Positions 4,098 to 44,130 of a DNA stretch of 64,000 bases are shown here, piece by piece. Made by a program: the position numbers and the translations under genes. The DNA comes from Blastocladiella emersonii ATCC 22665. Taxonomy: Eukaryota > Fungi > Blastocladiomycota. Where the stretch lies: the NCBI GenBank assembly GCA_025594325.1, contig JANHCV010000013.1, forward strand, positions 558,001-622,000, read 5' to 3'. The notes under the pieces are model-generated. The model did no database searches, was not told the DNA's origin, and saw only the letters and a list, made by a program, of their open reading frames with translations. Within the stretch, counting starts at the first letter, position 1. Each line of letters begins with the position of its first letter.

Positions 4098-5274
4098 TTT
4101 GAGCGAATCGCGTCGACTAGAGCCTCGCGATCATTGTGGAGAGCGTCCTTGAGGAGGGTAACAAAGTAAAACCGCCCGAGCAGCCCCACGGAATGCAGGG
4201 GAAGGGCGCGATCAAGCGGAAGCAACGTGTGTGCATTTTCAAGCTTGCCTGCGTAGAATTTAGTGACATTGTTGACAAAGCCAGCTTGGGCTTGGATGTC
4301 GCGATCAATTTTTCCTCGATGCTGAGCGAGCAGTACCACACGAGCTTGCGGATACAACTTGGCAATGGTATACAACGGGGTCAGGTCCCCGCCGCCATTG
4401 GGGTTGTATCAGCCGTGCGAGTAGAGCCACCCCATAACATCCGCCATGGTCTGGCAGGTCGGCGGGTACGGGTGCGCTTCTTTACAGAAGATGAAAGTTC
4501 CAGCATACTTGGTTGCCAGGTCAACTGAAAGCTGGTCCTGCTTGACATCAATTCGAGGCTAGGCATAGCTGGTCGAGTAGCTGTAAACTTCGGGAATCGA
4601 TCATATGCGCAGCCAATCTTGCCAATCGAGACAAACCGTGAGCAGCTGCGGCCAAGCACGTTCGATGTCAGCGAGAACCAAGTCAAGGAAGCTGACCGGG
4701 CTCGTTATGACCGCGCAAGCCGCAATAAGAAAGTAGACGGCAAGCGGATGCTCATAGAGCCGGCTCGGGCGGGCCGATTTCGCCCTGTCGACAACCGCAC
4801 GAAGATCGAAGAGCGGTAGGGTGTCGTCCTCCCAAAGGGATGCGTTGGTGACGGGTGAGCAACAACGCGCGCCGAGACGCAGCGGATTAGAGCGCGAAGA
4901 AAGGAGTCTGCGCTGAGGCGGCGAGCAGCGAGCCGCTCAATATCGTGCTCATCCGAGGGAGTAGGAACTTTCTAGCGCGAGCGGACCGAAGCACTAACCG
5001 CTGACCAGACGCTGGCGAGTCGCTCAGGCTTTGGGCTGTCATGGTTGACCTGGAATCGCTCGGAAGCTGGGTCGGAAGGAAAGTGTGAGATCTCAGCAAT
5101 CAACCAGCAAGAGAGGACGTGGATATCCGCGGACATGAGGTAGGTCGACCGCGAGGCAAGCAGGACCACCAAGCGCGGCTGAGCGAGCTGCCCAACCATG
5201 ATGGCGACTTTGGCCGGAAGGGCGGAGAAATCCATGTTTGGTGGTCGCCGGCTCGATTTCATAGAGTGATTCAT
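4098..5274 (-). pseudogene. F-box-like repeat-family gene, copy A, interrupted by the LTR
   Basis: N-terminus MNHSMKSS...DFSALPAKVAIMVGQLA and HTLLPLDRALPLHSVGLLGRFYF align to copies B/C. There is a stop at 4972 and frame breaks, and the frame runs into the LTR at ~4097. Confidence 0.8.
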
Positions 5275-5435
5275 GAAATTGACGAAGTGTGCTTCATGGG
5301 GTGCCGCGAGACCTCGAGCGAGAGCGAACAGCGGCCGAAACGCGTCGCGTCACTCAAATCAGTGTGAGTCGCCCGCGTCCCTACTCTCGAGAGCCCTTGA
5401 CCCCCTCAATGAAAACCATGTCAACTTCATGCAAC

Positions 5436-7105
5436 ATGCTCAGGACTACCCATGTACCCCAAGTCCTTGAGCGGATTCTTGTTTATGCGATCCAGCAACA
5501 CAGCGACGCGGCTGACACGGCGGGACTGCTCGAATACTCGCGTGTCTTGCCGAGGCCTCTAGCTCCACGAATCGATTGTGCTCTTCTAGAGTGCGCTTCA
5601 AGTCTTTCAGTTGATGGCGCGACACAACACGGCAATGTCGCGGCCCTCAGAAAACGAGCTGCTCTCAAATTTGGGCTCACCAGCTGCTCCCTTGAAGCTT
5701 TGGATGTCGCCATTCGCGGCGGGCACCTTGGAGCGCTTGAATGGTGGCGCGCTTCGGGCCTTCTTGACCTTACCCAAGTCAAATCGCACTTGGATCGCGC
5801 TCGGTACTCCTCGAGTCCATACGCCGCCCTAGGAGTTGAGTTGGACCAAGTTCGCGCCCTTGACCACGGCATTGTTGAAGGCCTCGAGGACGGTGATCCC
5901 ATCAAGCTCTTTGCTGTGGATGAAGGCATCGACGAAATATGCGCAGAAGTCGCTTCCGGCTATTACACGACCCTCACGCTCCAAACGAGACCAATCACAA
6001 TGACTGGAATCGAGGCTCTTAACGCTGCAATGGCGAACCCGCTGCAGTTGATTGGGTCGTTTGTTGCACACAGCAGCACTCTCGATCTCCCCCGCTTTCT
6101 CGCGCTTCGATTCCCTCCGTCGTTGCACACAATCCAGTACGTTGACGAGTGGCTTGGTACAGTGCCGCAGTCTCACTCTGTGGAGTTGACTCCGATGCGC
6201 TGGCCCCCGGGTCTTGAAAATCTGCACCTTGTTTCACCAAGGCTTTCGACTACATCTCGGTATCTCTTTCAAGGCCTTCCTAGGTCTCTCCGATCCATCA
6301 TTGTTGTGGATTCTGCGCTTGATCAGAACGCAGCGTCCCAGCTGGCTCGAGTTCTTCCACCGTTCCTCCAAAAGTTCAAGCTTGAGTCGCAGGGCCTGTC
6401 TAATGACTGGTTTGCGTCAGCAGTGCCGCTGCTTCCAGCCGCTCTTCAAGAGTTGTCGATGGGAAAGCTCAACGCTGGCGGCTCCCACGGATCGGCCGAG
6501 GAGACACTCCACGCGAGCCCAGCCGCGCTTCCCCAGTTTCTCAATTCGCTGACTCTCGCAGGTGAGCTATTGACCTCGCAACTGGTCCATACCCTCGGCA
6601 CCGAGGCTCGCTATTCTATGCGATCGCTGAAGCTTCGCTTCGACACAGCCACGGACGAAGCCCTTGCTGAAATTGCTCACGTATTACCCCCGAGGATCAG
6701 TGACTTGGAGGTCCGCATGCAGACCTCGCGCATTGGCGCCTTGACGCTCATCCCGCGGCTTCCGCGGTCGCTTTTTACACTCTACCTGTCGGACGTTGAC
6801 CTTGGGCTTGAAGGTGCTCAACTACTTGCGCAGCACACGCCGCCTAGGCTCCACAAAATTGCTCTTTGTGCGGCCAATCTCGACGATGCAGCTGCCGCGG
6901 CTCTCATTCCAGTTCTCTCTCACGGCTTGAGTGAGATCAACTTGAGTCCAACGCGATCACGGATGTCGGGGCGCTACCCCTTGCCGCGCGGTTCCTGGGT
7001 TATGGCGTCAGGTTCAACATGTGGGGGAACAGTGTTTCGGACGATGGCCACGCGGCGCTCAACGCTCCCTTTCCTCCCTGGGACTGGGAAATTGACGATG
7101 TGTGA
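5436..7105 (+). CDS. LRR (RNI-like) protein with F-box-like/ankyrin-like N-terminus, copy 1; apparent 1-nt frameshift at ~6948
   Basis: MLRTTHVPQVLERILVYAI, GHLGALEWWRASG and LPRSLFTLYLSDVDLGLEGAQLLAQHTP repeats. Paralog-like NAITDVGA...GNSVSDDG continues in another frame to TGA at 7103-7105. Confidence 0.8.
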
Positions 7106-7478
7106 TGAGACCCGTTTGGGGCAAGAATATATGTTACGTTTGAAGCGCTGAAAAGACTCAGTACTTTGATGATACCGTCAGGGATTAATTTACGGGGCCA
7201 GCCGCGACCAGCCTCAGTGCATCTCGAACTCAGCGATTTCTGCGCTGTCATGCCGCACTCAGCAAAAAATGACTTCCAAATCCTCGCAACAACAGCCACG
7301 GACTGGCGGGAACGAACGCTTCCGGCTCACGCCGGACGCGTCAATTTATCATGTGATGCCCGCGTGAGGCTGGTGCGACGTTTGGGATGTGGCGCAAGTC
7401 TCGCGCCGCCGCTCGCTTCGCTTCGACCGCATGTAGCACCTTACCACTTTGACTAGGACCACGTAAACTTCATGCAAA

Positions 7479-9125
7479 ATGCTCAGGGCTATTCATGTGC
7501 CCGAAGTCCTCGAGCGGATTCTTGTTTATGCCATCAAACAGCACGGCGACCCGGCCGACGCGGCGGGGCTCCTCGAGTACGCGCGCGCTCTGCCGCGGGC
7601 CCTGGCCCCGCGCCTTGAACGAGCGCTCTTAGATTTTACGTCGAGTCTTTCAATCGACGGGGCGACGGAGCGCGGCAATGTTGTGGCCCTGAAGAAGCGG
7701 TCCGCACTTGGGCTCTCGCTCACCAGCTGCTCCATGGTCGCACTGAGAGCCGCCATTGCCGAAGGCCATCTCGAAACACTAGAATGGTGGCGCGCTTCGG
7801 GTTTGCTTCATGCCGACGAAGTCCAAGATCTTGTCGATTACTACGAAGACCACACCACGAGTCCGCACGCGGCGCTGGGAATGCCTTATCGCGACGACGA
7901 TGACAACTTCTGCCCAGCGGCTGAGGTCGACGAAGGTATCGATGAGCTCTGCCTCGATATCGCGGCAGGTAGACGTGCAGACCTCTACCTTGACACTTGG
8001 TCCATCTCCATGGCGGGAATCAATGCGCTCAGTGCCGCCATGGCGAACCCTCTGCAGGCGGTCCGAACGGTTGTTTTTCGTAACTGCACCATCGATCTTC
8101 CTCGTTTACTCGCTCTTCGACTTCCGTGAACGGTGCGCAAGGCCGAATTCAATGCGCACTGGATCAGACAGCCGCCACCATCGTCTCTCGCGGAATCGAC
8201 ACCAATGTGCTGGCCACCGGGTCTCGAATCGCTCGTGATTGGGACACGGCGGATGTCAACTGCCATCCCCTACCTCTTCCACTCTTTTCCCGCGACGCTT
8301 CGCTCACTCCATATCGAAGGCGTCGATTGTGACGACCCAATGATCCTTGAAATTGTTGACAAGCTTCCCCCATTCCTCAAAGAGCTCGATCTACTATCCA
8401 GCTCGACTCGAGCTGGGTTCATGGCTGTCATCGCTCGACTTCCAGCAACGCTCGAAAGCCTTTCAATCGGATCGGATCCCATGGTTTGCACCGGGGACGC
8501 ACGTGCTTCATTATCGCTGCACAACACTCAAGGCAGAGTTCCCGTGCTTCCGCAGCTGCTTACATCGCTGGAGTTCGCAGGTGATGAGCTCGACGTTGAG
8601 TTGATCCACACTCTTGGCATTATTCCGCGCTACTCGCTTCGGAAACTTTCACTGCGCTTCAAAGAAGTCAACCACGAGGCAATGTTGGAGCTTGCCCGCG
8701 TCCTTCCGCCGAACCTCGAGGAATTCGTCGCCCGCTGTTGTTATACGTCCCGCGCTGGCATTATGTCGCTCATTCCAAGCCTTCCTCGAACGCTTACCGT
8801 GCTCGATCTCATTGACTCGGACATCGGATGCGAGGGCGCTCAGCTCCTTGCTCAACATCTGCCGCCCCGCCTCAAAGAGTTGCTGCTTCGCTCAACGAAC
8901 CTCGACGACGAGGCCATAGAGTTCTTGGCACTCGCGCTTCCGCAGACTCTCGCTGTTCTCAACCTATCCCTGAACACAATCACGGATGCCGGTGCATACT
9001 TACTCGCCACTTGCTTGCCGCCGGGCATCACCCAGCTCGGAATGTCGGGCAACGTCATTTCTGACAAGGCCGAGGCCACACTCCTCGCCGCCGTACCGCG
9101 GGTTTCGAACATCCGACACTGTTGA
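7479..9125 (+). pseudogene. LRR (RNI-like) protein, copy 2, with in-frame TGA at 8127-8129
   Basis: ORFs 7479-8129 and 8133-9125 share one frame and align colinearly with copy 1 across the stop. LPRTLTVLDLIDSDIGCEGAQLLAQHLP-type repeats are present. Confidence 0.85.
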
Positions 9126-9488
9126 CCAGGACGGCCGCGTAACATGTACTTTGATCCGTCGACTCCCACCTGTTCGTCTGGTTCAAAAGCGAGCCATTCA
9201 TTCATCATCAGTTCATGACGAGCAGCGAAAGTCGTTCAAAATTCAAGCAGCGAAAGTCGTTCTTCACCAAAATTCAATATATATTCCGCTCCCAATTCCA
9301 ACAAGCGCTCAGGGAAAGCAAGTGGCAAAGCCGAAAGACATCGTGACTGGCTGCTTGCGCGCATGAGCTGAGCGAGAGGCCCCGCTGACTGGGGCGTTTG
9401 TCGCGATCCAGGTCTTGCACACCCATGAGCTTCGTTCATGTCCTAACAGAGGCAGTCAAGTGATTTACACAGGGATCAAGGACGCCAA

Positions 9489-9513
9489 CTAGGTGTGTGT
9501 GCTGCGCACACAC
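9489..9513 (-). other. Candidate Helitron 3' terminus (8-bp hairpin, then CTAG followed by T)
   Basis: gtgtgtgc-tgc-gcacacac (9495-9513), CTAG at 9489-9492, 70-90 bp downstream of the PIF1 stop. The hairpin-to-CTAG spacing (2 nt) is shorter than usual. Confidence 0.45.
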
Positions 9514-9581
9514 TTGGGTCTCAGCTGTAGCTTTACTTGGCTTCTTGAGACTGTTTCAGTTGGTGAAAGTGAAGTAGTTTA

Positions 9582-11575: not shown

Positions 11576-12560
11576 TTAGGAAACGGGAGATCGCGAGGTC
11601 GGTCTAGAACGAGCCTGATGCGACTCAGTCCGCTGGCAAAAACTAGCACGGACCTGCCCGCCACCCAAACTGCTCACGCATGTCGCTCTCCTGCTCCGCG
11701 AGATCGTACAATCCACAGGAGCGGCCCGAATCCGGCGCACTTTGTCGAGCTGCTCGAGTTGCATTTTGGGCATGCTTGTGATGAGCGCTTCTACTCAATG
11801 ATTGCGCGGCATCCCGAGAAACACGCTGTCAGGAAGCATGCGGGTGAGCATGGGTGAAACTGGCCAGAGCGCGACAAAGAGATCCATGGCGAGGCCAAAC
11901 GACTTGACCCGCATCGCGTTGACAATGAAACCCGAGGTACCGCCGCTATAGCTGGTCGCGCAGCATGAGTTGCTGGACTCGTGGCGGAGAGCCGACTCAT
12001 GAGAGTGCTTGACGGCTGCGAGAAAAGCAACGAGAAACTTGGTCGTGGCCGCGTCCATCTCGACGTCCTCCAGTAGCAGGGGGAACGCGTTGCGCCACAC
12101 GGACTGGCACGAGAGTGGGCAGTTCGGGCACACAGTGAATCCGGGCGCGGGCGGGATGACAAGGTCGGCGTGTGACGAGAAATAGGACGCGAGCAGCGCG
12201 CCAAGCAGCGGCGCTGCGAGCTTTGCATTCTGAACGATCGCGAGCGCCCGATCCCGATCTGTTGTGAGAACCGTCGTTGTGAGCCACAAAAGCGCGTGCG
12301 AGACGGTTGATGACGGCGTGCCGAGTTGGTCGGGACTGGTCAGGAGCAAGGCGCGATATGACAGAGAACGCATTGGTTCGAAACGCGAGCGGCTCGGCCG
12401 GCGAAAGCAGCGCGGTGATGCAATCAAAGCGCTTGGTTCCGCAATCATCGTTGGTCATGTCAAAGACATTGAGCCCGATGCGGTCAAATGTATCGGGCGT
12501 TTCAGCAACACCATGGCCGGGGAGAGCCGCGCAAGCTGACTCACGGTGGCGGCCAGCTTG
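11576..12560 (-). pseudogene. Exon-2 (C-terminal) fragment of the F-box-like repeat family
   Basis: DRIGLNVF...SYFSSHADLVIPPAPGFTVCPNCPLSCQSVWRNAF...LRHESSNSCC matches copies B/C. There is a frameshift near 12370 and a stop at 11795. Confidence 0.85.
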
Positions 12561-14670: not shown

Positions 14671-17600
14671 TCAGATTGACTCGTCCGCGCTGCGAGGACA
14701 TGCGGGAAACAACGGCAGCATGAGGGCGCGCTTGAGGTCCGACTTGAGGGCGTACATGGCCACTCTCATTCCCGAATTGTATCGCGGGCCCTCAGGCAGT
14801 GAGCGGTCCGGTGCGGCCGCGTGGCAAAAGTCGAGGTACTCGCCAATCGCGGCTCTGCATTCGGGAGCGCACATGATGGGGAACTGCCACACGCGCTCGC
14901 GTTCGCACGCATCGTTGGCGTCCTGAACACGCTTGCGCGACTGCGTGAGTCGCGGGCGAAGCGGACTTGGGCTGGAGCGGGTGCGCGAACACGAAGCCGA
15001 TGTCAAGCGCAGGCGGGATGCCGGCGGCCTTGCCCTGCGCGGAAATTACGATGGGGCGGTGGACGAAGAGCACAACAATGGTATCATCCGGGTTACCTGA
15101 ATCCACAAACTTGACGGCACACGCGCGGCCGTCGTTTGCGGCGGCAAAATTAAAGACAGAGTGAAGCGTGTCCTTGAGCATCACCGCGTTCCACGCGCCA
15201 AAGGCGCTGCCGCGATTGGACTGCTCGCCCATGCGTGCCGCGCCGGCTGGCCACTCTGTCGCCGTGTACAAGCCCCAGAGCGAAGCGAACGCGGCGGCAT
15301 GCAAAAGCTCAGATACGATTGGCCCAGTCGCGGGAAGTGGGAACGGAGCAAAGCGCGGGACAAGTGGACCGAGTCCAAGCATCGGCGACACGGCGGCTGC
15401 AAGTTTCTGCACCGTGACGGTCACAATGCGCTTGCGGCGGTCGATGTCCCGTCAACAAGCAAGGCAACGTCGCCGCGAAACTGCGCAAGATCGACGTTGG
15501 GCACGGGCTTGACCTCGGCCTTGTCGCGGCCGCGCGGGATGCTCAAGACGAGCCGCCCAAAATTGTCCAATTCGTAAAGACCCATGCCGTTTCCTTCGTG
15601 AACAAGCCGAAGAATGGGAATGAACCAAGGCAGGTGGCGAAAGGGTTCAACGGCAGCCGCAGTGTAGTCGAAAACTCCCTGGATGCCAAGACGAACGCTG
15701 GCCATGGACACGGAGTGAGTTGTGACCGCATCCAAAGAAAATGGCGCAGCGCCTTTGTCAAACGGCAGCTTGTTGCTGATAAGCTCGAACTCATCGCAAG
15801 GTTGCGCGTCCAAAGCGTAGGTCCCATGAAGCGAGAACTCCGACCTGGTAAAAGACTTGGGGACCGCGCTTCCAAGCTCCCAGCAGACCCGCACCGTCCC
15901 ACGCTCCGAGTCGTAGTCGACGTTGAGACACTGGCTGTAAACGACCCCGCCGCCGTCGTCCGAGCTCGGCTTCATGGCCACCCGAATCGCGCACGCCACG
16001 TAATTGCAGTAATACGACTCGAGAAGCGTGAAGGTTGCGCTCGCGCGGTAGAGGCGACGGCTCGACGACGGGCTATCTTGTTTCAAGCCAAGGTATCCAG
16101 CAAGAAGTCGTTGCTCCGTGACAAAGTCGTTTGGCGACGGGCCGAAAAAGTGTTGAGACCACATTCCACCCATGTCGCGCGGTGAGAAGGGAAGCGAAGT
16201 GTAAGGCGTCGTTCCAGCCCAAACAAGTCGACGAGCGGCCATGGCGTAAGCCAATGCCTTGACGCCAAAGGCAGGGGTCTGCATCGGCCCGACTACAAAG
16301 ACGAGAAAGCAGTCACATGTCAGTCAAAACTGGCGCGCGGGGAGAGCAGTAGTGAAAAAAGAACCTACAGCGATCGTACTGCTCCTTGGGCGTCAAGGGA
16401 GACCCAGCGTCTCCAAATAAGAGCTCGTGCAGGCTCTGAAGCTCCTCCGACGCGCGAATCGAGACGGGCACGTTGGGAACGGGCAGCTTGCAAAAGGTGA
16501 GTTTGTGGAAGCTTTGAGTATTCGAAGCGTTGCGCTTGTTTGGAGCGAAAGGCTGGACGCGCGAGAGCCAGTGCCCCAACTCCCCGCCGTCCTCTTCAAG
16601 CACAGAGACGCCAAAGACGAGAGGGATGATGGAGACGGGAAGTCCAAACAACAGCTCGATGTACTCAGCAACGGACTCGGTACATGCGCGGAATGTACCG
16701 CTCGGGTAGAAGCAAAGCATCGAGCGGTCGCCTGCGGTGGGATGGTTGTACCTGAGCACGTGGGAGCCGTGAAGCAAGATGTTTCGCGCTCCGCAGCGGT
16801 CCACGAGCTTCGACGAGTCGACGACATCGAAACGGAGCCAGGTGTCGGCGAGGAACTGCTCCATGACAAGGACGGCGTCGCTGAGGACAAAGCTAAGCTT
16901 GTGAGCCGCCGGCGAATCAAGCGAGAACGCGTCGGACAGCGCGCGAAGCCAGGTGCGCACATGGTCGAACATGGCGCTCTGAATCCGGCCACAGCTCACG
17001 TCAAGAAAGAACCCGTCGAGCGGAGCCGTGTGAGAGAAATCCGCGAATGTCGGGTTCACGACCGTGCTCGATGTGACGTGAGGACCGTCGGCTGGATGTG
17101 CAAAGGGGGAGCTTGGGCGACTCGAGGTGCAATCGGCCAAGAAATACGAACCGCTCTCAACGACCGACTGGATCTCGCACCGCGTGCGAGCAACAATCGA
17201 AGGCTTAAGCTTCTCCGCCGAGCTCATGAAGCACGGCGATTCCAAAGTCTACATCTTCATGTCAACGAAGCGGGTGTGGCGCAACCGCAATCGCATTCGT
17301 ATCGACAAGGCCGGAAAGCCAAATCTGACGCGTTTTCAAGAGCTCGGAGGCCGAAAGGGCCAAGTCTGCATTGTCCAGCCAGCGCAGCCAGCAGTCGTGG
17401 GCCGCACGAAGCGTGGCGACATCCATGACGCGCACCCGGGTCGAGTCGGACAGCCAGTCAAACTCGATACACGCGCGCATTTGGTCGCACCAGAATGTGA
17501 GCGCCTGCTGCTCGAGAAGCTCCGAGAACCAGAGCTGGCCGACGAAGCGGTCGAGAATGTCGCGGTCAAGGTCCGAGTGCATGAGAGCGTGAAGGATGAG

Positions 17601-21441: not shown

Positions 21442-23702
21442 TCAGCGCCGGCCAAACTGCTCGCGCATCTGATACTCACAATCCAAGGCTTCGTAATCAC
21501 GGCGATGAACGCTCGCGGCCCCAATCCGGTCCAGCTCCATGAGATGCTCGTGCTGGATTCCCGGCGTGTTCTCAATCAGCGCGTCCAGCCGGTCATCATA
21601 AGCGATCACCGCGAGCGCATCACGAGGGATTACAGGGGTGAGCCCAGGGGAGGCGGGCCAGAGTGCAACGACAAGGTCAATAGTAAGGGACGGCGACTTG
21701 GCCAGCATTGCCTCAACAAGAAATGCAGTGGTACTGCCGTTTTCGCTTGACGCACAACACTCGTTGATGGATTCGTGGCGCAGCGAAGTGTTTTGAGTGC
21801 GCTTGACGAACGCGAAGTAAGCGTCGAAGACCGAGGACGCGTCAAAGTCTGTGTCAAGGGCGTCAAGGAGCAGCATAAACGCGTCGCGCCACATGGCTTG
21901 GAACGACAGCGGGCAGTTGGGACACGGCGTGAACCCAGGTACGGTCGGAAAGACGAGGTCGGCGTGCGATGAAAAGTGCGCCGCGAGCATGGCGCCAAGC
22001 AGCGACGCGGCAATCTCGGACCGGTTGACGATCGCAAGCGCTTGATCGCGGTCCGTAGTGACAACCGTGGTCGTAAGCCACGAAAGCGCGTGCGAGACGG
22101 CTGCTGAAGGAGTGCCAAGGGAGTCGGGATTGGTCGGGAGTAGGCGCACAGCAATGGCAAAGGCATCAAGTCGAGTAGCGGCTAGCCCGGGCGGAGAGAG
22201 AAGTGCAGTAATACACTCAAAGCGAACGGCTCCACCGTGATACCCGAATACGTCGAGCCCAATGCGGTCAACAGTTCCAGGCGAGCCAGTCGTCCGCGCG
22301 AGGTGGACTAGGCCATCCAGGAGCGACGGCCGGGGCAAAAAGTACCTTCCGCCTCGCCTCAAACACGCGCGCCGAAATACTAAACGCGGCGAAATCGAGT
22401 ATGAGGGCTGTACGGCATGCGAGTACCGCGAATAGGCAGCGTACCATCAACAAGAATGTTGTCCCACAGTGCGGTGTACGGCGCGAGCCCACTGCAAAGC
22501 ATGGTCACATCATCTCTGAGGTCGTCAGCAAGAGCGCGTGCAAGGGCGCACTTGAAGTAGAACGAACCGACCAGGTCGAAAGAACGGAGCGGAAGGACTT
22601 GATCGACTGAATGCTCGTCGATCAACTCGATATAGTGAGCCGTTTTTTCCTCTACAAAGCGATTGCGGTCGAGCTTGGCCAGATCTGCCTCGACTTGCTC
22701 GGGGAACCGCGCAGCGAGAAGCGCGAGCGCGGCCGGGTAATGAATGGCTACCAAGTCCAATGCAGTGGTACGTTCAGCGCCCCGCTGAATGTTGGACCAG
22801 CCGCGCTCGTACAGCCATCCAACGATGCCGGCAACGCTTTCGCTCGATGGGGGGCGCGATGGCAATGTAAGCATGAATACACACTTGTTGCCAGATTTCG
22901 CTGCCAAGTCCGCGACAAGCGCGGCCTGATCGAGTCCAAACTCGGGGCGCGAGAGCAGTCGAAGCGGTTTAAATTGCCAAAACACAGTCGCGGTAAAAGC
23001 AAGCACGTCCGCGAAACGCGGCATCCAATTGGGCCGCCGGAGCATGTCTGTCGCGACTTCCACGGTGACTTCCACATGCGCGAAGCGACATGGGTTCAAC
23101 ATGGGGACAAGTTTCAACCACTCGGACCAGCTGAGAGTCATGAAAAGTAGCTGCGGCCACCTCGTCTTGATGTATCCGAGAAGCTCCTCCAAGAACGCCG
23201 CGGAGCCGGTCTCGGCTGAATGCACCGCGAGGAGGACGGTGACCGCGAGCGGGTGCCGGTGGATCTGGCGTGGTTCTGCGGCTTCCGCACGAGCAACAGC
23301 CGCCACCAAGTCGAATTCCGTGCTGCCGTCCACAACAGCGGTCCAAGTACACGCGTGCAGCACGCGCATCATGGACTCGGTACGGACGCGGCCCTGCTCA
23401 TAAACAGCAGGACAAGGCCAGTCCGTGAAAGCATTGATCTTGTCGAGTGCGCGTGATGTCGTGGACCAAGCGCTGCGGCCGAGTTCAGGTCTGTAGTCAA
23501 AGCGAGCGATCGCGGCGATAACCCAGCGAGAGAGAAAATGCGGGTCGGAAGCCATCATGTACGTTGTGCGGGAAGCGAGGATCAACGACGGGCGGAGCTC
23601 CGCAAGCAGGCCCACGGCGACGGCGAGCTCGCGTGGAAGGTCGGCGAGGCTCAGCGGCCGCATCTTTGAAGTGCCTAGGTTGGATTGCATGGAGTGATTC
23701 AT
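21442..23702 (-). CDS. F-box-like repeat-family protein, copy B (intact, ~731 aa; intron 22380-22444)
   Basis: SLADLPRELAVAVGLL motif. A 65-nt GTACGC...TAG phase-1 intron joins LVD|VFRRACLRR in frame, with no stops. Confidence 0.85.
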
Positions 23703-24582
23703 TGTAGCAAGGTCGCTTTCACGGTGTGCTTCATGGTAGCGGGGAGCTCAAGTGGTCGGCGCCGACTTTGGCGTTGTTGATCAAACAGCTGACCGCCGCT
23801 GCCGGCTTCTCCTCCGCACTTGGTTGCCGAGCGGCATTTACAATGATGAATAACGCCATGTAACTTGACGCAACATACTTGAGCAGTATCCGTCGTTCCG
23901 TGCCAGTACAGCCTGGCCGACTCGCGAATACGACACTCTGGCGAGCGCCGCAATTGCCTCGATCGGTGTGCCACGCGTGCATGAGCATCATCATGCCACC
24001 TCGCCATGGCCTTGTGAGCCGAGCACCGCATTGAGTCTCGTCCGCCTTGATCGGGCCCGCTTCCGCGACGGCTGCCGCCCGCCTGCCTCGGCTCGCAGCG
24101 CGGTGACCGCTTTCGGACTGGACCGAGCTCGGACACCTGCTCGGACACGCTGTGTCGCTTCCGGTTCCCAATCCGCGCCCGCACAGGTGCTAGCGGCTCT
24201 TGTCGACCTTCAACCCGCTCACTTTGCGATTCTTCCACGTGCATGCGCCCCGACTGCTTCGTCGCTTCCCAACCTTCTTTGCTGTCACGGCTTTGCGCCA
24301 GGAGACCCTCCTGCGCGTCCGCTCGCCAAGTTTTCCCCACGTTTGCTCTGCGACCCTGGTGCGTCTTTGCTCACCGACCTTCTTCAATGTCCGCTCATCC
24401 GCCGCTCGTCCGCATCGTTGCCCATGCGGCCGCGGACCTGCAGTGGTAGTGGTGCGACGGCCGTGCCCACTCCCATACAGCTCAGGTGGGTGAAAGACCT
24501 TCAGGCACGAAAGAGCGTAGCAGTTGTGCTAGAATACAATTAAGAGTATGTTGCGCGAAAGAGCGCCGACAATTCAGTTCGG

Positions 24583-26872
24583 TCACGAGGTCTCGCTCGC
24601 GTCCGCACGCTTGCGGCCAAACTTCTCGCGCATCTCGCTCTCCATGTCCACGGCCTCGCACGCTTGGCGGTCAGGAAACGTGGCCTGAATCCGGACCATT
24701 TCCTTGAGGTGCTCGCGCCGGATTCCCGTTGGAATATCGGCGAGCGCATCCAATCGAATGTCGCGCGGGACGCCAGCAAATGCAGCATCGGGAATCATGC
24801 GGCTGAGCATAGGCGAGACGGGCCAGAGCGCGACGAAAAGGTCGAAAACAAACAGGGGCGATTTCGTCCGCATCGCCTCCATAATGAAAGCCGAGGTGCA
24901 GCCGCTGCTATCCGCAGCACAGCGCGCGTTGCTCGACTCGTGGAGCAGCGCCGATTCGTGGGAATGCTCAAAGTTGTTGAAGAAAACGGAAAAGCATTCG
25001 GACGGATCAGAGTCCGCGTCAATCGCGCTCAGGAGCAGAGTAAACGCGTCACGCCACGCGGGCTGGTACGATAGCGGGCAGTTGGGGCACACGGCGAACC
25101 CAGGCGCGGGCGGGAAGGCAAGGTCGGCGTGCGACGAGAAGTGAGCCGCGAGCATCGCGCCAAGCAGCAGCGCAGCAATCTTGGAGCCCTTAACGGCTTT
25201 CAGCGCCTGATCGCGGTCCGTGGTAAGGACACTGGTCGTAAGCCACGACAAGGCGTGCGAAACGGTCAAAGAAGGGGCAGTAATTTGGTTGAGATCGGTG
25301 GGAAGCAGGCGCGCTGCAACAGCGAAGGCATCGAGTCGAGTGGCAGTCGGCTCGGGCAGAGCAAGCAGCGCGGTGATGCACTCGAAGCGGGCGGCTCCGT
25401 ACCTGTCATTGGTATTGTTAAAAACGTTGAGCCCGATGCGGTCGACAGTTCCGGGCGAGCCAGTCGTGCGAGCGAGATGAACCAGACCGTCCATGAGTGA
25501 CGGCCGCGGTGAGAAGTGTCTCTCGCCGCGCCTCAGACAGGCTCTCCGGAATACTATAGCCGCGGCGAGCTCATGCGTTAGGGCACTACGGCTTGAAGAA
25601 ACGGTGGAGAGCAGACGTACCATCAAGGAGAATGTCGTCCCACAGTGCGCCATATGGAGCGAAACCACTGCAAAGCAAAGCCACGTCATCCTTGTCGCCA
25701 AATTCAAACGCACGCGCAAGGGTGGCCTTGAAGTAGGACGTGCCGACCAAGCCGAATGGAAAGAGCGGAAGGATTTGATCGACAGGGTTGTGAAAATCGG
25801 TATAGGATGCCGTATTGTCCTCCACGAAGGCCTTGCGGTTGAGCTTGGCCAAGTCCGCCTCGACCTGCTCTGGGAAGCGCGCAGCGAGAAGCGCAAGGGC
25901 AACCGGATGATGAAAGGCGATGTTTCCCAACGCAGTAGTATCTTCTCGCCGAATGTTCGACCAACCGCGCGCGTAAAGCCATCCAACGACGCCGGCAACG
26001 CTCTCACTCAAAGACGGATGCATTTGCAAGGCGAGCATGAAGATACACTCGAAGCCAAGTTCCGTTGACGCGACCGCGACAAGCGCGGCCTGATCGATGC
26101 TGTACTCGGGGCGGCGCGAGAGCAGCAGAAGCGAGACGGATTGCCAGTACACGGTCGCGATGAAGGCAAGCACGTCCGTGAAGCGCGGTGTCCAGTCAGG
26201 TTGCTTAAAGACGTCCACGAGGTTTTCCGCGTTGATCTTTTTGAACGTGAGCTCCGAGAGGTCCATGAACGGAACCAGTTTCAGCCACTCGGGCCAGCTG
26301 AGAGTTAGAGTAAGAAGCTGCGGCCACGCCGTCTTGATGTGATCGAGAAGCTCCTCCAAAAATGCCGCGGAGCCAGTCGCCGATGCATGCGTTGCGAGGA
26401 GTACGGTGACCGCAAGCGGGTGCCGGTGAAACTGGCGCAGGTTGGCGGCATCCGCGCGAGCAACGGCCTCGACCAAGTCAAAGTCCTCATTGCCCTCTGA
26501 GGCGTGGGTTCGGGTGCACGTGTGCAGCACGCGCATCACGGACTCGACAAGGATGCGGGCCCGCTCAAGAAAACGAGGTGGGGGCCGGTATCTGCAGGAG
26601 GCGCCGAGCCTATCAAGCGCGCGCGAAGTCGCGGACCAAACGCTGCGGGTGGGATTGGGACTGTTGTCCAGACTAGCGATCAAGCCGACTGCCCAGGACG
26701 AGAGAAAGTGTGGGTTGGCTATCATCGTGTAAGTCGTGCGAGAAGCGAGGACCAAGTCGAGGCGAAGCTGTGCGAGTTGGCCCACCGTGGCGGCGATCTC
26801 GCGCGGGAGGTCGGCGAGGCTTAGCGGCGGCATCTTGGAAGTGTCTAGGCTGGATTGCATGGAGTTTTTCAT
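24583..26872 (-). CDS. F-box-like repeat-family protein, copy C (intact, ~740 aa; intron 25554-25620)
   Basis: MKNSMQSSLDTSKMPPLSLADLPREIA. A 67-nt GTACGT...CTAAC...TAG intron joins LLD|VFRRACLRR. Tandem paralog of copy B. Confidence 0.85.
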
Positions 26873-28288
26873 AGTAGCAAGGTCGTTTTCATGGTGCGGT
26901 TCATGGCGGAGGGGAGCTCGAGTTGCCGGCGCCGACTTTGCGGCCGTTGATCCAACAGCTGACCGCCGCTGCCGACCTCGCCTCGCTCTCCCTCCCGCTT
27001 CCCCGGCAGGAACAACTGCCATGTAACTAGCCGCACACACATGATTGTATCTTAACTGTCGCGCGCCAGAGCGCCCGCCCTCGCTGGAAGATGCTCGTCG
27101 TAGTTTCACGCGCGGGTGTTGTTGGGCCGCCTTGTCATGAACTCGTCCCTCGAGAATCATGTTGAGAGCTTTGTCCCCTCCTACTGATCCCGCCTTGGCG
27201 CTGGCTGTCGCGTTTCTGCTTCGGCTCGCTGGGTGGCGACTGCTCACGGGTCAGCTTCAAGGTCAGTCACGCCGTGTCCCTTACGCTTCCCGATCCGTGC
27301 CCACATCCATGGCCACGGCTCCGTCATAACGATTGGCGAGACCTCTCCATGCTCGGGGCCCCGGCACTGCGCCAGCAATCACGGCTCACGTCGACTTTCG
27401 ACCTGCTCACTCGCGACTCGCCCGCGTTCATGGCGGCCATTCTGCGTCCTTGTTCCCCGAGCCTTCTTGCCGCTCTCCCAGCGAAACAGCCTCGCACCCC
27501 GCGGCTGCTGCGTCTCCTCCCGCCAAGCTTTCTTCACGCTTGCTTTGCGACTCAGGCTGGTCTTCGCTCTCCGATCTTTCCCACTGCTCGCTCAGTCACT
27601 TGTCCGCGCATCGTTAACCATGCGACCATGAACCTGATGCACGCGCCTGGTGTCCCGCAATCCGGATCGCCGCGCTCTCACTCCGCGGACGCGCACACTG
27701 GCGAGTAGGCCAGCAGCTGACTGCCTTCTTCGCGCTCGATGGCGACATTTGAAGCGCACGAACCGGTGTACTCCGCATCGCGCGCTTTACTTCCTTCACC
27801 AGCACCGCTTGAGCGCGAGCGTGTGCTTGGTCGCCGTCCGTCACACTTGCAGTGGCGCAACGCGTCGCGGAATGGCTCGAACGCGAACTTAACCGCCGCC
27901 TGCGTACCGTTCGGCACATGAACCGTGGACGCAACCAGAACTTTGGTCGCCGCGGCGACGACAGTGCTTGCGAACTTAGTTGCGCGGGCAGCGGCAGATC
28001 GTTGTGGCCGCGGAACGGGCGACTACCACTTGTCAAGCTTTACGCTCGCGGCTGGTGAGCTGGGTTCGCTCTGCAACAACCATTCGATCCTCAACTAGTT
28101 TAAGCGAGCACGCGCAACGATGAAAAAGGGTTTCGATGTGTCCTAAAACTTGGAGGTTGCGTGAGAAGAGCCATGGCCAAGGCCGCGGCCAGAGTCGTTT
28201 TCTTGCAGCTCAAGTCTTCTGGGCACGCAGGAATGAAGCGGGATGCATTCGCAGATGTGCTAAGATACAATGAAAGAAAATATGGCGC

Positions 28289-31363: not shown

Positions 31364-31397
31364 AACGGTGAGATCACCCTGATGAATGTAAGCGCTA

Positions 31398-32415: not shown

Positions 32416-32458
32416 TATATATTCAGCAGGGCGACACAACCATCCCTGTTCAACTCAT

Positions 32459-36004: not shown

Positions 36005-36088
36005 CGCACTGGAATACACGCTCACACTTCTTGCTCACACTCTCACGACTCGAGTTATAGGAAGCGCGAATATACCAACGATTAGAAC

Positions 36089-37555: not shown

Positions 37556-39845
37556 CTACTGAGTCGCGTCAAAAGCAGACGGTGCGAGCCGTTTGAGCTC
37601 AGCCAACTCGACCTTTCCAGCGAAAGTTGGGTCCAATTCTAGCTCTCGCGAGAGCTGAACAAGTTCAGGCGTGTCGGCTGTGCCATCAAGCGCGCCATCG
37701 TGGAGCAACTCGCTGAATACGCCGGGAATCGGCCTGTAGCTCTCAATAAAGAGCAACGTTGAGAGCGGATCGACGCGTGCGAGCGTCCGAAATAGGAATC
37801 GCAACAGCCCTCCTTCGACAGCACACGTGTTGCACCGAAGCCGAGCCTTGCGACGCAATGCCTGAGCCGTACGATGCTCAAGGCACTCGAGCTCTTCGGG
37901 GTCGCCGTCAATCCCGTTGAACCACCGTTCGTCGACCTCGCGCAAAGCCGTCGGGAAGTGCTCGACCAGGGCCGTGAACGCGCCGCGCCACGGCTTCTGG
38001 TCGATGAGCAGACACCGCCTGCATAATACTAGCCCAGGAGCACGAGGCGTATCGCGGTACCGATCGTCATCCGTGCTTGCCCAGAGCATCGCGCCGACAA
38101 AAAAGGGCGCCGTGCGCGTTTCCGCAACAACCGCGAGCGCGCGGTCACGAATTTTGGGATTGGAGACCGCGAATGCGAGCACAGACGCGATCGAGTAAGT
38201 GTAAGGCGCGAGATCGGTCCGGTCGCGGCCACGCGCGTCAATCGCGTAGCAGAGAATGGTAAGCAGGTCGGCAGGGTCCGCCGTGATCTCCCCACCGATC
38301 AGCGCATCTATGGTATGGTTCAGGCAAGTTTCCTGCGCAAAGACTTTGCCAAAGAGCGGGAGGTGGTCGCGGACACCAGTGTCTCGCGCAAGCAACACGA
38401 TCATTTCGGGGATCTCGCGGATCGTTTGGGGGTGCAGGGACAGTTCAAAAGCTACACGAGTAGGTGAGTGATTAATTAGTGAACCGCCCAAGGGACAAGC
38501 GGGTCAGTGGGGCGTAGTCGTATCGTACCTTGGACGAGAACGTTTCGCCAGGCATCGCGCTGGCCCTCGAAATGAGAGCGAATAAAGTCAACAATCGCAG
38601 AGCTGTAAGAACCCAGCGCGTTTACAAGGATTTCGCCCCAGCCTTCCGAGCTCGTACTCACGATGCCGTGGTCGATCAGACCCTGGAGTTGGTCTGGCGA
38701 GATCATCCTGCGCTGGACCCTGGTGTAGACGACTTGCCAAATCTTTTTCTTGTCTGAACGCGAGAACGACTCGAGCGCAACCGCAGTATGATGAGCAAGG
38801 AGATGCTCTAAGACCCGAGGCCCACACCACGTCGCAGCGCAGATAAAGGACGTGCGATCCTCATCAGCATGAGACCAGCCGTTGGAAATGAGCCAGTCGA
38901 GCACCCAGTTCACACTCGAGTTCGAGACATCGTTGCGAAGGTTCTTGAGACAGTCAACAAGCTGGCATGAAACGGGTTCGAGGCGGAGGATGTCGATGAG
39001 AGAGCTCGTGTCAAGTCCCACGGTTTGCGCCGTGAGCGGTCCAAGCAGGGCGCGTTGCCAAGTGAGGACGGCCATGCCACCAAGAAGCTCAGCGAGGCGA
39101 ATAGGCTGGTCACACAAGGAGGGAAGATTGAGGCCCGGCTGAGGGTTGGAGCTGCTGCCAAAAAAAAAAGTCTGCGCACTGGAAGGTCAAGTCGCACCCA
39201 GTCATCCGACTGCAACACGAGGTCGAAGATACTCGGAAACTTGGTCAATGCCTCGTCGAGAAGGATCGAAAAGAGCGAGAGACGGCATTGGGTGACTGAA
39301 TCAAAAAGTAGACGGAGGTACGCGCCAAGCGGGGTCTGCAGAAGAGCTGAGACTTGAAGTGCGGGAGTACTGCTTTGCTGGGCACGAACGCGGGCTTCCA
39401 AAAGGCTGGGCAGTCGATCTCCAGCAGCAATGGATCGGGCAAGCTGGTGCAACATGGAATCATGCATAGGGAAGGCGTCCAACGGCGCGCCGTCGCTAAC
39501 CCAACGATCCGGAAGCTTCTCGCGGCGCGGTGAAAGCAGTCGACGCCGATTTCGGACGTTTAGCTCCACCTTGCGAAATGCGAGCAAAGCATTTGAAACT
39601 ACGCGCGTAGCGGGACTTTCCGCCTTGGTCACAGATCGGATCCAGGAGTCAAGCGGCGGAAGCTTGGCGGAAATCCAACCATTGACGGTAAGGGAGTCAA
39701 GTGAGGCAGAATACAGGACACTCGAGGAGGCAGGAACGCGCAAGGTCGGTAAGGCGAGTTGGGCAACCCTGGCAAGGAGATCCGAGGGCAAGTCGGCCAG
39801 CGTGGTCCGCGGAGCTCGCTCTTCAATATACATGGAGTTATTCAT
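37556..39845 (-). pseudogene. F-box-like repeat-family gene, copy E (intron 38452-38528; frameshift at or near the A10 run 39160-39169)
   Basis: MNNSM...TLADLPSDLLARVAQLA; QPIRLAELL and VLDWLISNGW in the next frame; the conserved intron; PGLVLCRRCLLIDQKPWRGAF. Confidence 0.8.
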
Positions 39846-40290
39846 GGTTCAAGTGATTGCATTGCAGGGTGCGAGCTGGCGTCAGGGAGAGCGGGCGAGG
39901 GGTGAGCGAACAGCGACGCAAAAGCGGTTTGCTCAAAGTGCGGCGAGTATCACGTGAGATCTCACATGATATCTCGACGCGTCCTTCCCGGTGCGTCCCC
40001 AGTGACCGGGCATTCTCGCGTCTTGGCACGAAGGAGCACGATACCACCCCCGCGCGCGATGCAGCCTCACAACGGTGATTCATGTAGGAGCTGGCGTGCT
40101 GTAGCTAGGCTTCAGACACGGCATGTACACCTTTGCTGGGGCGAGCTGAGAGTGTCGCGGCGGGTGACAGTTGGGAACGATGGTCAGGGAATAAAGCTTT
40201 TGTATTAAAGAATATTGACTACGTTGCTCGCGGCGATCCGAAATTCCGCCTCAAAAAGGGAACACGATACCTCGCACGCCGATCGACCTC

Positions 40291-41364
40291 CTAGGATTCG
40301 CTGTACGCCTGGTCGAAATCGGCCGCCACGCGTCCAGTACGGTCGCGCTCGAGCACAAGGTCGCAACCCTCGGGACATTTTCGATCGAACATGTCTAGGG
40401 CCCATCCGTCGTTAAACTCGACATTCAGCCAGCCGTGCGCGTAGAGCCACTCGATGACCGCGGCCACGTCGCGGTACGCCTTGGCGCGAACCCACAAGTT
40501 GGTATCAAACGCCCAATAGGCGGGCCCGCGCGCCCGGAAGGTGGTGGCGAGCGCTTTTTGGTTCACGGCGTACTGCGGACGCAGGAGCACCTGCAGCGAC
40601 TCGATCTGCCAGTTGCCGATCGCGAGGAAGGCGAGAACTTCGACAAAGCGAGGCTGACGGTTGCCGCCAAACTTGGTCGGGAATTTGAGTTTTTCGGGGA
40701 AACTGCAGGAGCCGGTCAGGATTTGGGTCCAGGAAGCCCACGATTCTGAAGTGGTAAGCAGCTGCGGCCAGCACGCCTGAATATCGGCAAGCACCTGCTC
40801 CAGGATGCCAGTGAGGCCCGAATCAGCTGCGCGAATCGCGACGAGGAGGTAAATCGCAACCGGGTGATGAAAGAGAGCGCGAAGGCCGGCTTCCTTGGCG
40901 CGTTTGACAAGGGTGCCGAGGTGAGAGGCCGTTTGCCCCAAGTTGAGCTGCCCGCCGTGGCGCAACGCAGTCACTCGGCGCTTGGTAACCAAGAGGAGCA
41001 TGCGGGTGAAGGACTCGATTGGGACGCGCAGGTGACGCGCCGAAAACTTGCCGTCGGTATATAGGGCTCGGTCGCCAAAGTACAAACTGCCGTCATAGTA
41101 GCCTGCGAGGCCATCCCAGAGGGTGTAGCACCACGCCTGAGAGTGGAGTTCGTCAAGTAGCCAAGTGGATTGCACGGACAAGTCGCAAGAAAGACGGTGG
41201 GTGACGCTCGAGCAGGCGGCGACGGCGGGGTAGGGCCGCGCGAGCTTGACTACCGCAAGGGCAAGTTCGGTCGGGAGGTCGTTGAAGTGAAGGTCTCGCG
41301 ATCCCGCCGCGGCCAACGTGTTTTGAGTCGATTGCATGGAGTGTTGCATCGAGTCTTGTTGCAT
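40291..41364 (-). CDS. F-box-like repeat-family gene, copy F, C-terminally truncated (no exon 2 seen)
   Basis: HFNDLPTELALAVVKLA, HHPVAIYLL, QPRFVEVLAFLA and IEWLYAHGW align to exon 1 of copies B/C. The ORF stops before the shared intron position. Confidence 0.75.
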   Translation of the reverse strand: MQQDSMQHSMQSTQNTLAAAGSRDLHFNDLPTELALAVVKLARPYPAVAACSSVTHRLSCDLSVQSTWLLDELHSQAWCYTLWDGLAGYYDGSLYFGDRALYTDGKFSARHLRVPIESFTRMLLLVTKRRVTALRHGGQLNLGQTASHLGTLVKRAKEAGLRALFHHPVAIYLLVAIRAADSGLTGILEQVLADIQACWPQLLTTSESWASWTQILTGSCSFPEKLKFPTKFGGNRQPRFVEVLAFLAIGNWQIESLQVLLRPQYAVNQKALATTFRARGPAYWAFDTNLWVRAKAYRDVAAVIEWLYAHGWLNVEFNDGWALDMFDRKCPEGCDLVLERDRTGRVAADFDQAYSES

Positions 41365-41915
41365 GGTACGCCGAACGACGAGAGAGTCAGGGAGAAGGAG
41401 ATGCGCGCGAGTCGAGCAGAGCTCCCCTTCACTGCTGCTGACCGTTCGCTGACCAATTGCGTTCGCTGACCGTTTCGCCTTAACGCGCCTTCCAAGAAGC
41501 TCACCGATGGTTCCAAGTTCCAAAGAAAGGCTTGTCTTAGCATTGTTTTTATCGGGTACGTGATGGCTCGGGAGGGGAAAAGTGAAACGAGCCGCGTCTG
41601 TTCCAAGCCCGCGGACGCGGTCAGGTGCACATGTTCATCGCGTCGAAGTCGCGTCGGACCCACGCATCACCTGGAACGGAGAGCCGACGGAGAACCGTAA
41701 AAAACTTGAAGATTCAAGCAGGAGCTCTCGACCGAGCGACGAACGAAAAGAGAATGTATGGGCGCAAACGAAAAGAGAATGTATGAGCGCGAGTGGAGCG
41801 ACAATCGAGGGTGGGTGGAACCGTGTTACGGGCAGCGCGAGACACAATCCACGCGCACGAGATCACGTAAGCCGTGTGTCTCGGCAAACGTACGCATCCA
41901 CTGTGGGTCAGCGCG

Positions 41916-44130
41916 CTAAAACTCGTGGAGGAGATATCGCGTAGGCCCACCATTCGGCGCGCTCGCCGCGCAGCAGGCGTTTTTAGCCTCGCGCTTAAGC
42001 CCAGAAACCAGTCCGCGGGCGAGTTTCCCATTGGCAGCCGAGTCGCGGAAGTAGCGGTATGTCTCGATTTCGCGCATGGCAGTTGGGAACCAGGCAAGCG
42101 TCGCTTTGAGCGCATTTCGCCATGCGCGCTGGTAGGTGACAGGGCATTGAGAACATAGTGCAAGGCCGGTGGCGGCGAACGTGCACTGCGGGCAGTCCCC
42201 GCAAGCTGAGGTCCAGAGCATCGCTCCAAGCAGGTACGAGGCGGTGCATGTCCCGGCAATAACCTTGAGTGCACGGGCGCGCGCGTTTGGGGAGCCGAGG
42301 GCAACAGGCGCGATCCACGCTACTGGCCGCGTCGCGTTTTGAAGATACGGACTCTCTGGGCCAAGAAAGCAAACGACCTTGAGTGCGATTGCCAGAAGAT
42401 CCACTGGGTCCGCGATCACGTCGCACTCGAGCAAAACACGAAAAAGCGATTCGGGTTCGTCGTTCATGAGCACGGCCTCGCTGAAGCGGTCCGTCATGTC
42501 GCCAAGTCCAAGTCCCGAGTCGCGGGCAAACTTGACGACAGCCTGCGGTGACGTGGCAGACAAAGCTTGTGCGTTAAGATTTGAACGCGACGCGCTGTAG
42601 ACCACGAGGCTATGACAAAGGGCTACACTTGCCTTGAGTGCGTTTAGTGCGATTTGAGAGCACTGTCAGTTTACTAGCGACGCGTACCAGCCACGACTGC
42701 GTTGAGCCACGCATTGGGGCCGAGATAACCTTGGAACAGCATGATGATGTCAGGACAGGGCGTAATTGAAAAGGCAACGGCTTTTCCCCACTCGCGGGGG
42801 TCCAAACAAAGGAGGTCGTGCTCAAGGATGAGCGCCATTTGATCAGGTTTGATCTATGGGGCTGTCTGAAGTCGAGTAAAAATTGTATAACTAAGTCCGT
42901 GGTAATCTTGATTGACATCCCTAGCTCGGCCCACAGTAGCGACATGAGCATGGTGCTCGAGGCCCACAGTAGCGACATGAGCATGGTGCTCGAGGCCCAC
43001 AGTAGCGACATGAGCATGGTGCTCGAGGCCCACAGTAGCGACATGAGCATGGTGCTCGAGGCCCACAGTAGCGACATGAGCATGGTGCTCGAGGCCTACA
43101 GTAGCGACATGAGCATGGTGCTCGAGAACATGTAAAATTGCGTCAATCCCGCCCTTTTGCACAAAAACTACAAGGCTCATTGGCCGCCCCGCGGTTGTGG
43201 CGAACCAGCCGTTTGAAATGAGCCAATCGAGTACTTGCATATGCGATTGGCGGCCAAGGTTTCGGCGAAGCATGTAGAAGACAGGTTCAAGCTGAAGGAA
43301 AGAGACCAGCGCGGATACGTCAAGTCCAACATTGAGCGCGAGCATGGGATTTAGCATGTCAATGCACCAGTGCCGCACGGCGAGAAAAGTAACAAACTCG
43401 ACCAGACGAAGGGGATGGGTCAGCAGAGACGGGGTTCCATCGACGGTTCTGCAATCTCGGAAAACATGAAGAGGGCCCGTATTCCACTCTTCCCACGTCA
43501 TCTCGATCTCGAAGAGCGCCGGGCTGTGTTGGGCAATGCCTGATATAATGTAATGTGTGCAAGAAGCGGAGCAAACTTTCTCTCGATGACCATGGAGAGG
43601 ATTAGCACGCAGGTGGCGAGCGGGGGATTGGACAGTGGCGACATCGAGGCGGTCGTAATGCTCCAACGAATCGAGTCAGCAAGCTGCTCAGCGCGCCTGC
43701 CGCGCACAAGGTTCGCGAGCCGCCTGCCTCCAATGAGGGTCCAGAGAGCGCGGAGTAACGAGTTAGTTTCCTTGTTCGCAAGCTCAGTGTGAATACGCGA
43801 GCAATCCATGAGAAACTCGCTATTCCGAAGCACACAATGCGCTTGCGAGATTGTGCGCAAAGAAGAATCACACAAGTGTGGGTTGCCCCGAAAGTTCCAG
43901 GTTAAGCAATGAACACTCAATCGCTTGATTTCGGGAGGAAGCCAAACCGCGAGAGTAGGACGCTCACGCGCAAGCACAGTGAGGTTCTGAGAGGCGGCTG
44001 GGACGGCCGAGCGAGGCCGCGTGAGCTGGAACAGAAGAAGCAAGATTTCGGCGGGCAGCTCGGCCAGAGTCAAAGGCGGTGACCCCTCGTCCGGCGGAGA
44101 TCGGGCTCGCGAATGCATGTAGTTTCCCAT
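41916..44130 (-). pseudogene. F-box-like repeat-family gene, copy G (intron 42623-42687; several frameshifts and stops)
   Basis: TLAELPAEILLLLFQL, HPLRLVEF, VLDWLISNGW, the conserved intron, and GLALCSQCPVTYQRAWRNAL...NACCA. Confidence 0.8.
42928..43125. repeat. 33-bp tandem repeat x6 (ggcccacagtagcgacatgagcatggtgctcga), in frame as LEHHAHVATVG
   Basis: Five identical units and one with a single substitution are read directly. Confidence 0.97.

Follow-up and report, generated by a model that had tools for sequence, protein, structure and literature searches.

A tandem, co-oriented gene family of Blastocladiella emersonii: putative substrate receptors of ubiquitin ligases with a predicted two-part solenoid body

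We analysed 64,000 nucleotides of the genome of the fungus Blastocladiella emersonii ATCC 22665 (assembly GCA_025594325.1, contig JANHCV010000013.1, ~558-622 kb; hereafter the window), in which a 40-kb stretch holds an array of genes and gene fragments belonging to one uncharacterised family. Searches by tblastn with the two longest copies, together with an iterated hidden Markov model (HMM) run over stop-to-stop segments of the six-frame translation, identified nine related copies or fragments, of which two (B and C) are intact and seven are broken or partial (Table 1). All nine lie on the minus strand, and family matches were found on this strand only across the window (two-sided binomial p ~0.004 for 9/9). 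An earlier reading of this DNA (the original prediction) had placed nine minus-strand copies in the array, with only B and C intact, and the searches recovered them at the same places, with weak ends that agreed to within ~100-200 nt. All details of that observation that were checked proved right, and its interpretation did so in part.

The reading frames of B and C are open once a single GT-AG phase-1 intron, which lies at the same codon in both genes, is removed. The two proteins are 61% identical, and their DNA is 71.6% identical over 2.4 kb, including ~110 nt upstream of the ATG. Comparison of B with C gave a nonsynonymous divergence (dN) of 0.27 and a synonymous divergence (dS) of 0.74, and since the resulting dN/dS ratio is 0.37 (bootstrap 0.31-0.47), both copies are under purifying selection. 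In sliding windows of 80 codons the ratio ranged from 0.14 to 0.71 and never rose above the latter value, with the strongest constraint at the exon junction and around a CxxC motif in the C-terminal half (C-half) of the protein, and the weakest in the solenoid of the N-terminal half (N-half). Diversifying selection between B and C was not seen, and the word "diversifying", as the original prediction applied it to the family, finds no support in this comparison. The CxxC motif is conserved and is followed ~50-70 residues on by a second, more variable cysteine pair (CxxC...Cx(0-3)C), a set that could possibly form a structural zinc site.

The remaining copies display a range of lesions that make evident the birth-and-death turnover proposed for this array: nonsense, frameshift, truncation, minisatellite and fragmentation were all seen. 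The one nonsense codon of copy D falls within the conserved CxxC motif. For the lesions of E and G, contig sets from four sequencing runs of the same sample match the window, with the exception of one low-depth run; the shallowest run has T9 in place of T10 in copy E, and even with T9 the two parts of E are not in one frame. The two deep contig sets lend no support to assembly error as the source of the E and G frameshifts. The minisatellite of copy G consists of five in-frame repeats of 33 nt each (~43090-42930, peptide unit VGLEHHAHVAT), after which stops occur; short-read contigs fail to bridge it. Copy F is a truncated, dead copy or a short form, and perhaps the latter: the public annotation includes paralogs of 327-448 aa that consist of the N-half only, although these could instead be truncated gene models.

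Table 1. Coordinates of the family copies, their upstream open reading frames (uORFs) and neighbouring genes, in window positions.
Feature	Position	Strand	Description
Copy A	5274-4022	-	N-half only; four pieces (5274-5044, 4813-4604, 4558-4412, 4390-4022); broken by frame changes or stops at 3 or more points; HMM scan, tblastn
12-kb piece	12506-11801	-	C-half fragment, N-half absent; ~54% identity to B; one frame change near 12340
21-kb piece	21274-21020	-	small C-half fragment with internal stop, just downstream of B; DNA match to 21612-21797
Copy B	23702-21442	-	intact, 731 aa, two exons
Copy B exon 1	23702-22445	-	F-box-like motif (residues ~19-60) and ankyrin-like solenoid
Copy B intron	22444-22380	-	65 nt, GTACG...TAG, phase 1
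Copy B exon 2	22379-21442 with stop (21445 without)	-	armadillo/HEAT-like C-half with CxxC ... CC cysteines
Copy C	26872-24583	-	intact, 740 aa, two exons
Copy C exon 1	26872-25621	-	
Copy C intron	25620-25554	-	67 nt, phase 1
Copy C exon 2	25553-24583 with stop (24586 without)	-	
Copy D	34796-32636	-	full-length, intron position retained; sole lesion seen is TAG at 32980-32978
Copy E	39845-37652	-	full-length, intron retained; frame change at T10 run 39170-39161
Copy F	41364-40294	-	open 356-codon N-half, then stop; C-half absent
Copy G	44130-41925	-	frame change near 43570; minisatellite, then stops; recognisable C-half 42503-41925
uORF of copy A	5271-5297	-	8 codons; TGA overlaps main ATG (ATGA)
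uORF of copy B	23699-23734	-	11 codons; TGA overlaps main ATG
uORF of copy C	26869-26904	-	11 codons; TGA overlaps main ATG
uORF of copy E	39842-39862	-	TGA overlaps main ATG
Retrotransposon integrase open reading frame (ORF)	2310-3893	+	Pfam rve, Integrase_H2C2; adjoins truncated end of copy A
Two paralogous ORFs	5289-7151, 7479-9125	+	common N-terminal ankyrin-like region; ribonuclease inhibitor (RNI)-type leucine-rich repeats (LRRs; Pfam LRR_6)
Annotated 850-aa protein	48553-51105	+	no Pfam family, weak Ank_2 match; third-position GC 0.97

An LxxLPxE-type motif near the start had been described as common to the copies. In B, C, E, F and G it is found 17-25 residues into the protein, and in A (ALPAKV) and D (GDVSTE) it is degenerate. 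An alignment of 24 N-terminal sequences showed the pattern L-x-x-L-P-x-E-[LI], hydrophobic residues every 3-4 positions, A-S-[RK] and an invariant Trp; L22 is nearly invariant, the Pro and Glu are common, the V/L/A spacing is kept, and the invariant Trp (W60) lies 37 residues past the motif Pro. We take this layout and the Trp spacing to match the canonical F-box pattern and the usual end of the box. In the structural model of the N-half, helices at residues 24-33, 38-41 and 45-51, followed by one at 54-67, were predicted with a predicted local distance difference test score (pLDDT) of 73-83, and the first three would be compatible with a three-helix box. A language-model search with residues 14-72 of copy B gave a top score of 0.94, with ~98 of the 100 named neighbours belonging to F-box sets, and residues 6-64 of paralog P0004 (27% identical) gave a top score of 0.92 to the same F-box families. 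A homolog in Catenaria opens with a more canonical LPVEIILDILSL. The N-terminus was also considered as a membrane anchor, a reading that we rejected: the most hydrophobic 19-mer (residues 26-44, Kyte-Doolittle score 1.65) includes E, R and P, and the model shows a helix-loop-helix there.

AlphaFold2 models were built from alignments of 35 sequences for the N-half and 16 for the C-half. Both are all-helical and confident, with a pLDDT of 82.9 and a predicted template modelling score (pTM) of 0.84 for the N-half, and 74.2 and 0.75 for the C-half, in which the first 54 residues past the exon junction are poorly modelled. The nearest shapes to the N-half were ankyrin-repeat clusters (template modelling score, TM, 0.42-0.43; Z 6-7.4), with TRPA1, FEM1B and NOMPC among the matches, and those to the C-half were ARM/HEAT clusters (TM 0.50), designed armadillo proteins (E 0.07-0.2) and importin-alpha. 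The best match of the N-half among AlphaFold DB clusters was an uncharacterised protein of 783 aa (E 7e-4, TM 0.56), which is the size of the family's own proteins, and two fungal proteins named "F-box domain-containing" were among its top five AlphaFold DB matches, with weak scores. Fold searches of the PDB with both halves returned nothing significant (Foldseek E>=0.04; wide VIA-align Z<=7.5, within the noise of helical repeats), and searches of the ESM Atlas by shape, Foldseek and wide VIA-align returned generic helical-repeat matches only. As no member matched the Pfam ankyrin models (PF00023/PF12796) and no match to the Pfam ARM or HEAT models was found, "ankyrin-like" and "ARM-like" are used here as labels of shape and not of family membership. 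The models thus read suggest a two-part alpha-solenoid body, with an ankyrin-like N-half and an armadillo/HEAT-like C-half. Pfam scans of all the pieces, the 35 members and the family consensus identified no named family covering the body of the protein; with neither a PDB sequence match nor a significant fold match, the description of the family as uncharacterised was upheld.

Relatives were sought by searching 1.84 billion representative proteins with the N-half profile at E<1e-3, and 24 were found (best 1e-37), none of them close to B or C. Of the 20 that were looked up, 19 are B. emersonii proteins named "hypothetical protein H9P43_..." and encoded on other contigs; the remaining one belongs to Catenaria anguillulae. 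These relatives are 23-35% identical to the window copies, and many also have the core of the C-half. P0001 (KAI9173056.1), of 1425 aa, comprises two tandem family copies in one gene model. The Catenaria protein P0021 (A0A1Y2GYF0, ORZ26834.1; E 6e-4), the only one of these 20 from outside Blastocladiella, shares the family's N-terminal motif and N-half, and is modelled as a fusion of the latter to a class C G protein-coupled receptor (ANF_receptor and 7tm_3). The gene model of P0001 is a probable merge, and that of P0021 a possible one. The Catenaria proteins are very divergent from the family (~15% identity), and the AlphaFold DB entries A0A1Y2I444 and A0A1Y2I842 are presumably also from Catenaria, by their accession series only. 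On this distribution of sequences, the family appears to be specific to the Blastocladiomycota.

The published B. emersonii genome consists of 21 contigs (34.27 Mb), for which funannotate predicted 10,031 genes (PMC9730499). The window lies on one of these by exact-protein matches, and its EFL1 ORF is 100% identical to a sequence of this genome on a 1.377-Mb contig. None of the five window copies checked (B, C, E, F and G) is in the public annotation. We regard B and C as unannotated because they are absent from two protein libraries that include the proteins of this assembly, and a word-indexed protein search with exon 1 of copy B gave no match. No public gene call lies over E, F or G on their strand, the sole call in the E-G region being a 63-aa ORF on the opposite strand, within the minisatellite of G (42944-43135). 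We also examined the 22-kb surroundings of each of four annotated paralogs, and all four loci contained further copies, nearly all co-oriented and unannotated. These amount to at least 9 additional copies or fragments, several of which approach full length, and only 4-5 of the ~14 copies at these loci are annotated. These results suggest a large, multi-array family that is mostly missing from the B. emersonii annotation. The intron occurs at the same profile position in copies at four other contigs. In a maximum-likelihood tree of the N-halves, the window copies formed the clades {A,B,C,F} (Shimodaira-Hasegawa-like approximate likelihood ratio test, SH-aLRT, 100) and {D,E,G} (90), and paralogs from the same contig paired together. 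This grouping of copies by array and contig is what tandem duplication in place would produce.

The start region of the family genes has a recurrent arrangement. Copies A, B, C and E are preceded by uORFs of 6-11 codons whose stop codon TGA overlaps the main ATG as ATGA, which suggests that these genes are candidates for control by termination and reinitiation. The same overlap recurs in one unannotated copy on another contig (L001 ~16040-16060), the neighbour of which has only a minimal ATG-TAA upstream. We also observed that the uORF start resembles that of the main ORF (ATGAAnCACnCCnTGnAA), which gives the impression of a duplicated start region.

The family genes further differ in base composition from their surroundings, with a third-position GC content (GC3) of 0.59-0.74 versus 0.90-0.97 in five conserved neighbour genes of the window. 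The array (4000-44200) forms an island of lower GC, at 0.55-0.62 versus 0.65-0.69 in the flanks, in a window where GC ranges from 0.55 to 0.69 and introns are short and of GT-AG type. Repeat-induced point (RIP)-like mutation was rejected as the cause of the low GC (TA/AT ~0.5 and (CA+TG)/(AC+GT) 1.1-1.3 across the array). Such a GC3, far below the genome norm of above 0.9, would be in line with weak codon selection and low expression, and is probably the reason that ab initio gene prediction passed over the family.

The explanation that we favour, with a little better than even confidence, is that this is a tandem, co-oriented and Blastocladiomycota-specific family of Skp1-cullin-F-box (SCF)-type receptors that grew by local duplication and whose surviving copies are kept by purifying selection. 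The full gene, of two exons, would encode a cytosolic protein of ~730 aa built only of alpha-helical repeats, in which an LxxLPxE[LI] helical motif is followed by an irregular ankyrin-like solenoid of ~350 aa and an armadillo/HEAT-like solenoid of ~300 aa. In their most likely mode of action, the proteins would bring substrates to cullin-RING ubiquitin ligases of the SCF type as receptors, with the N-terminal motif docking on Skp1 and the long solenoid holding the target. New copies would arise by local tandem duplication, making each array its own clade, and would be lost through nonsense mutation, frameshift, truncation, repeat expansion or insertion of transposable elements (TEs), while survivors remain under purifying selection. 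The low GC3 and the uORF overlapping the start codon are both compatible with low, regulated expression.

Several results weigh against this explanation, most of them concerning the F-box. The Pfam models PF00646 (F-box) and PF12937 (F-box-like) stayed below threshold in all ~35 members: one of the 35 matched an F-box model at a sub-threshold level, two gave sub-threshold F-box-like matches at the expected position (E 0.037 and 0.073; 13-14 bits versus a cut-off of 24.3), and the seven window N-termini gave no match at E<=10. Nor did the family consensus match these models. Profiles of 7 and of 24 N-termini found no F-box protein among PDB sequences, and two single N-termini retrieved no F-box chain from the same sequences, only chance matches; the 24-sequence profile had no match at E<=10 among 5.8 billion proteins. 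The language-model scores are leads rather than tests; a score of 0.9 is attained by 4-10% of shuffled sequences. All fold matches are below the usual significance (TM<=0.56, Z<=7.5), and the possible zinc site is proposed from cysteine spacing, with a variable second pair. The claim of an F-box-like N-terminus in the original prediction therefore stands in its motif pattern, its modelled helices and its language-model scores, and fails in the profile searches of Pfam and the PDB. We consider it more likely than not, short of proof, that the N-terminus is homologous to F-boxes, and somewhat less likely that it binds Skp1.

A different account makes the proteins helical-repeat scaffolds or adaptors that are unconnected with SCF ligases, in which the LPxE helices only cap the solenoid and resemble an F-box by convergence. 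All HMM-based F-box tests failed, that of the consensus included; the residues of this short motif are common ones; and the first helices are packed into one continuous helical domain in the model with pTM 0.84. However, two divergent members landed independently among F-box clusters in the language-model search, weak Pfam F-box-like matches fall at the right place in two members, F-box-named fungal proteins are among the nearest predicted structures, and the conserved Trp is spaced as at the usual end of a canonical F-box. We judge the scaffold account to be rather unlikely. In the opposite direction, the receptors might be taken to form a repertoire for the recognition of non-self or parasites (viruses, mobile elements or mycoparasites), silenced by uORF reinitiation until challenge, as a fungal counterpart of the F-box immune repertoires proposed in nematodes and plants. 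We consider this elaboration improbable; the innate-immunity or effector role put forward in the original prediction is an argument by analogy and found no support here.

It could also be supposed that the family is the cargo of mobile elements such as Helitrons, or was spread by them, and is largely selfish or junk DNA. TE remnants are interleaved with the array (for example, the integrase ORF), two annotated Helitron_like_N/PIF1 genes (L004 1-6240, contig JANHCV010000010.1) are located 4-10 kb from paralog P0006, and low GC3, many dead copies and neglect by gene predictors would all be in keeping with such an origin. In contrast, Pfam identified no transposase, integrase, reverse transcriptase, Rep or helicase domain in the family proteins; the unit duplicated between B and C is the gene with ~110 nt upstream only, with no shared termini and no inverted or long direct repeats found around the two genes; the closest relatives lie within the same array, as unequal crossing-over predicts; and a dN/dS of 0.37 means that selection has acted on the encoded protein. 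With no TE domains found and no shared termini around B and C, the family is not a transposon protein. The nearness of family arrays to Helitron-type genes may be a coincidence, and we hold an origin as mobile-element cargo to be very improbable. Still less credible is the idea that all copies, B and C included, are non-functional relics whose frames are open by chance. The genes are unannotated, their GC3 is low and 7/9 neighbours are broken or partial, yet at a dS of 0.74 two neutral frames of 2.2 kb would not both have stayed open with their splice sites, and the bootstrap interval of dN/dS (0.31-0.47) excludes 1.

The favoured family of SCF-type receptors can be compared with known ubiquitin-ligase receptors of two kinds. 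The nematode F-box/FBA families and the plant FBA, FBK and FBL families are lineage-specific F-box expansions in tandem arrays. Like these, the family described here combines a short LPxE-type motif at the N-terminus with a variable domain for protein binding, and has dozens of co-oriented tandem copies with many pseudogenes and array-specific clades. Unlike these, its N-terminal motif is missed by Pfam F-box models, its two-part alpha-solenoid body has no sequence relative outside the Blastocladiomycota, and no sign of positive selection was seen between its two intact copies. In the use of a long solenoid as the target-binding part, it would resemble the cullin-RING receptors FEM1 (ankyrin), ZYG11/ZER1 (armadillo-like) and APPBP2; FEM1B/C, APPBP2 and Zyg-11B were among the weak fold matches (E 0.2-0.4, TM under 0.3, Z 6.3). 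However, there is no sequence similarity to FEM1, ZYG11 or APPBP2, which dock by BC/Cul2 boxes and not by an F-box.

B. emersonii is under development as a model zoosporic fungus. If the N-terminus of these proteins binds Skp1, the ubiquitin-ligase receptors of an early-diverging fungus would have undergone a major expansion specific to its lineage, and their target-binding domain would be one without known relatives. Otherwise, the proteins would still present a new, well-folding two-part solenoid architecture, as judged from the models, that is restricted to the Blastocladiomycota. In both cases, the family offers re-annotation a concrete target and is a clean case of birth-and-death evolution. 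The label that fits it best is that of a largely unannotated, blastoclad-specific family whose members are putative substrate receptors of ubiquitin ligases and have a new solenoid body in two parts.

The copies are interleaved with LRR genes and TEs, as had been predicted: the ORFs with Pfam LRR_6 matches and the integrase ORF account for these. Insertion of the latter may have removed the C-half of copy A. The two paralogous LRR ORFs lie head-to-head with copy A, and no F-box signal was seen in them; their GC3 is low like that of the family (0.58-0.74 for the family genes together with the ankyrin/LRR ORF that adjoins copy A). Beyond the array, the annotated 850-aa protein is uncharacterised and probably well expressed.

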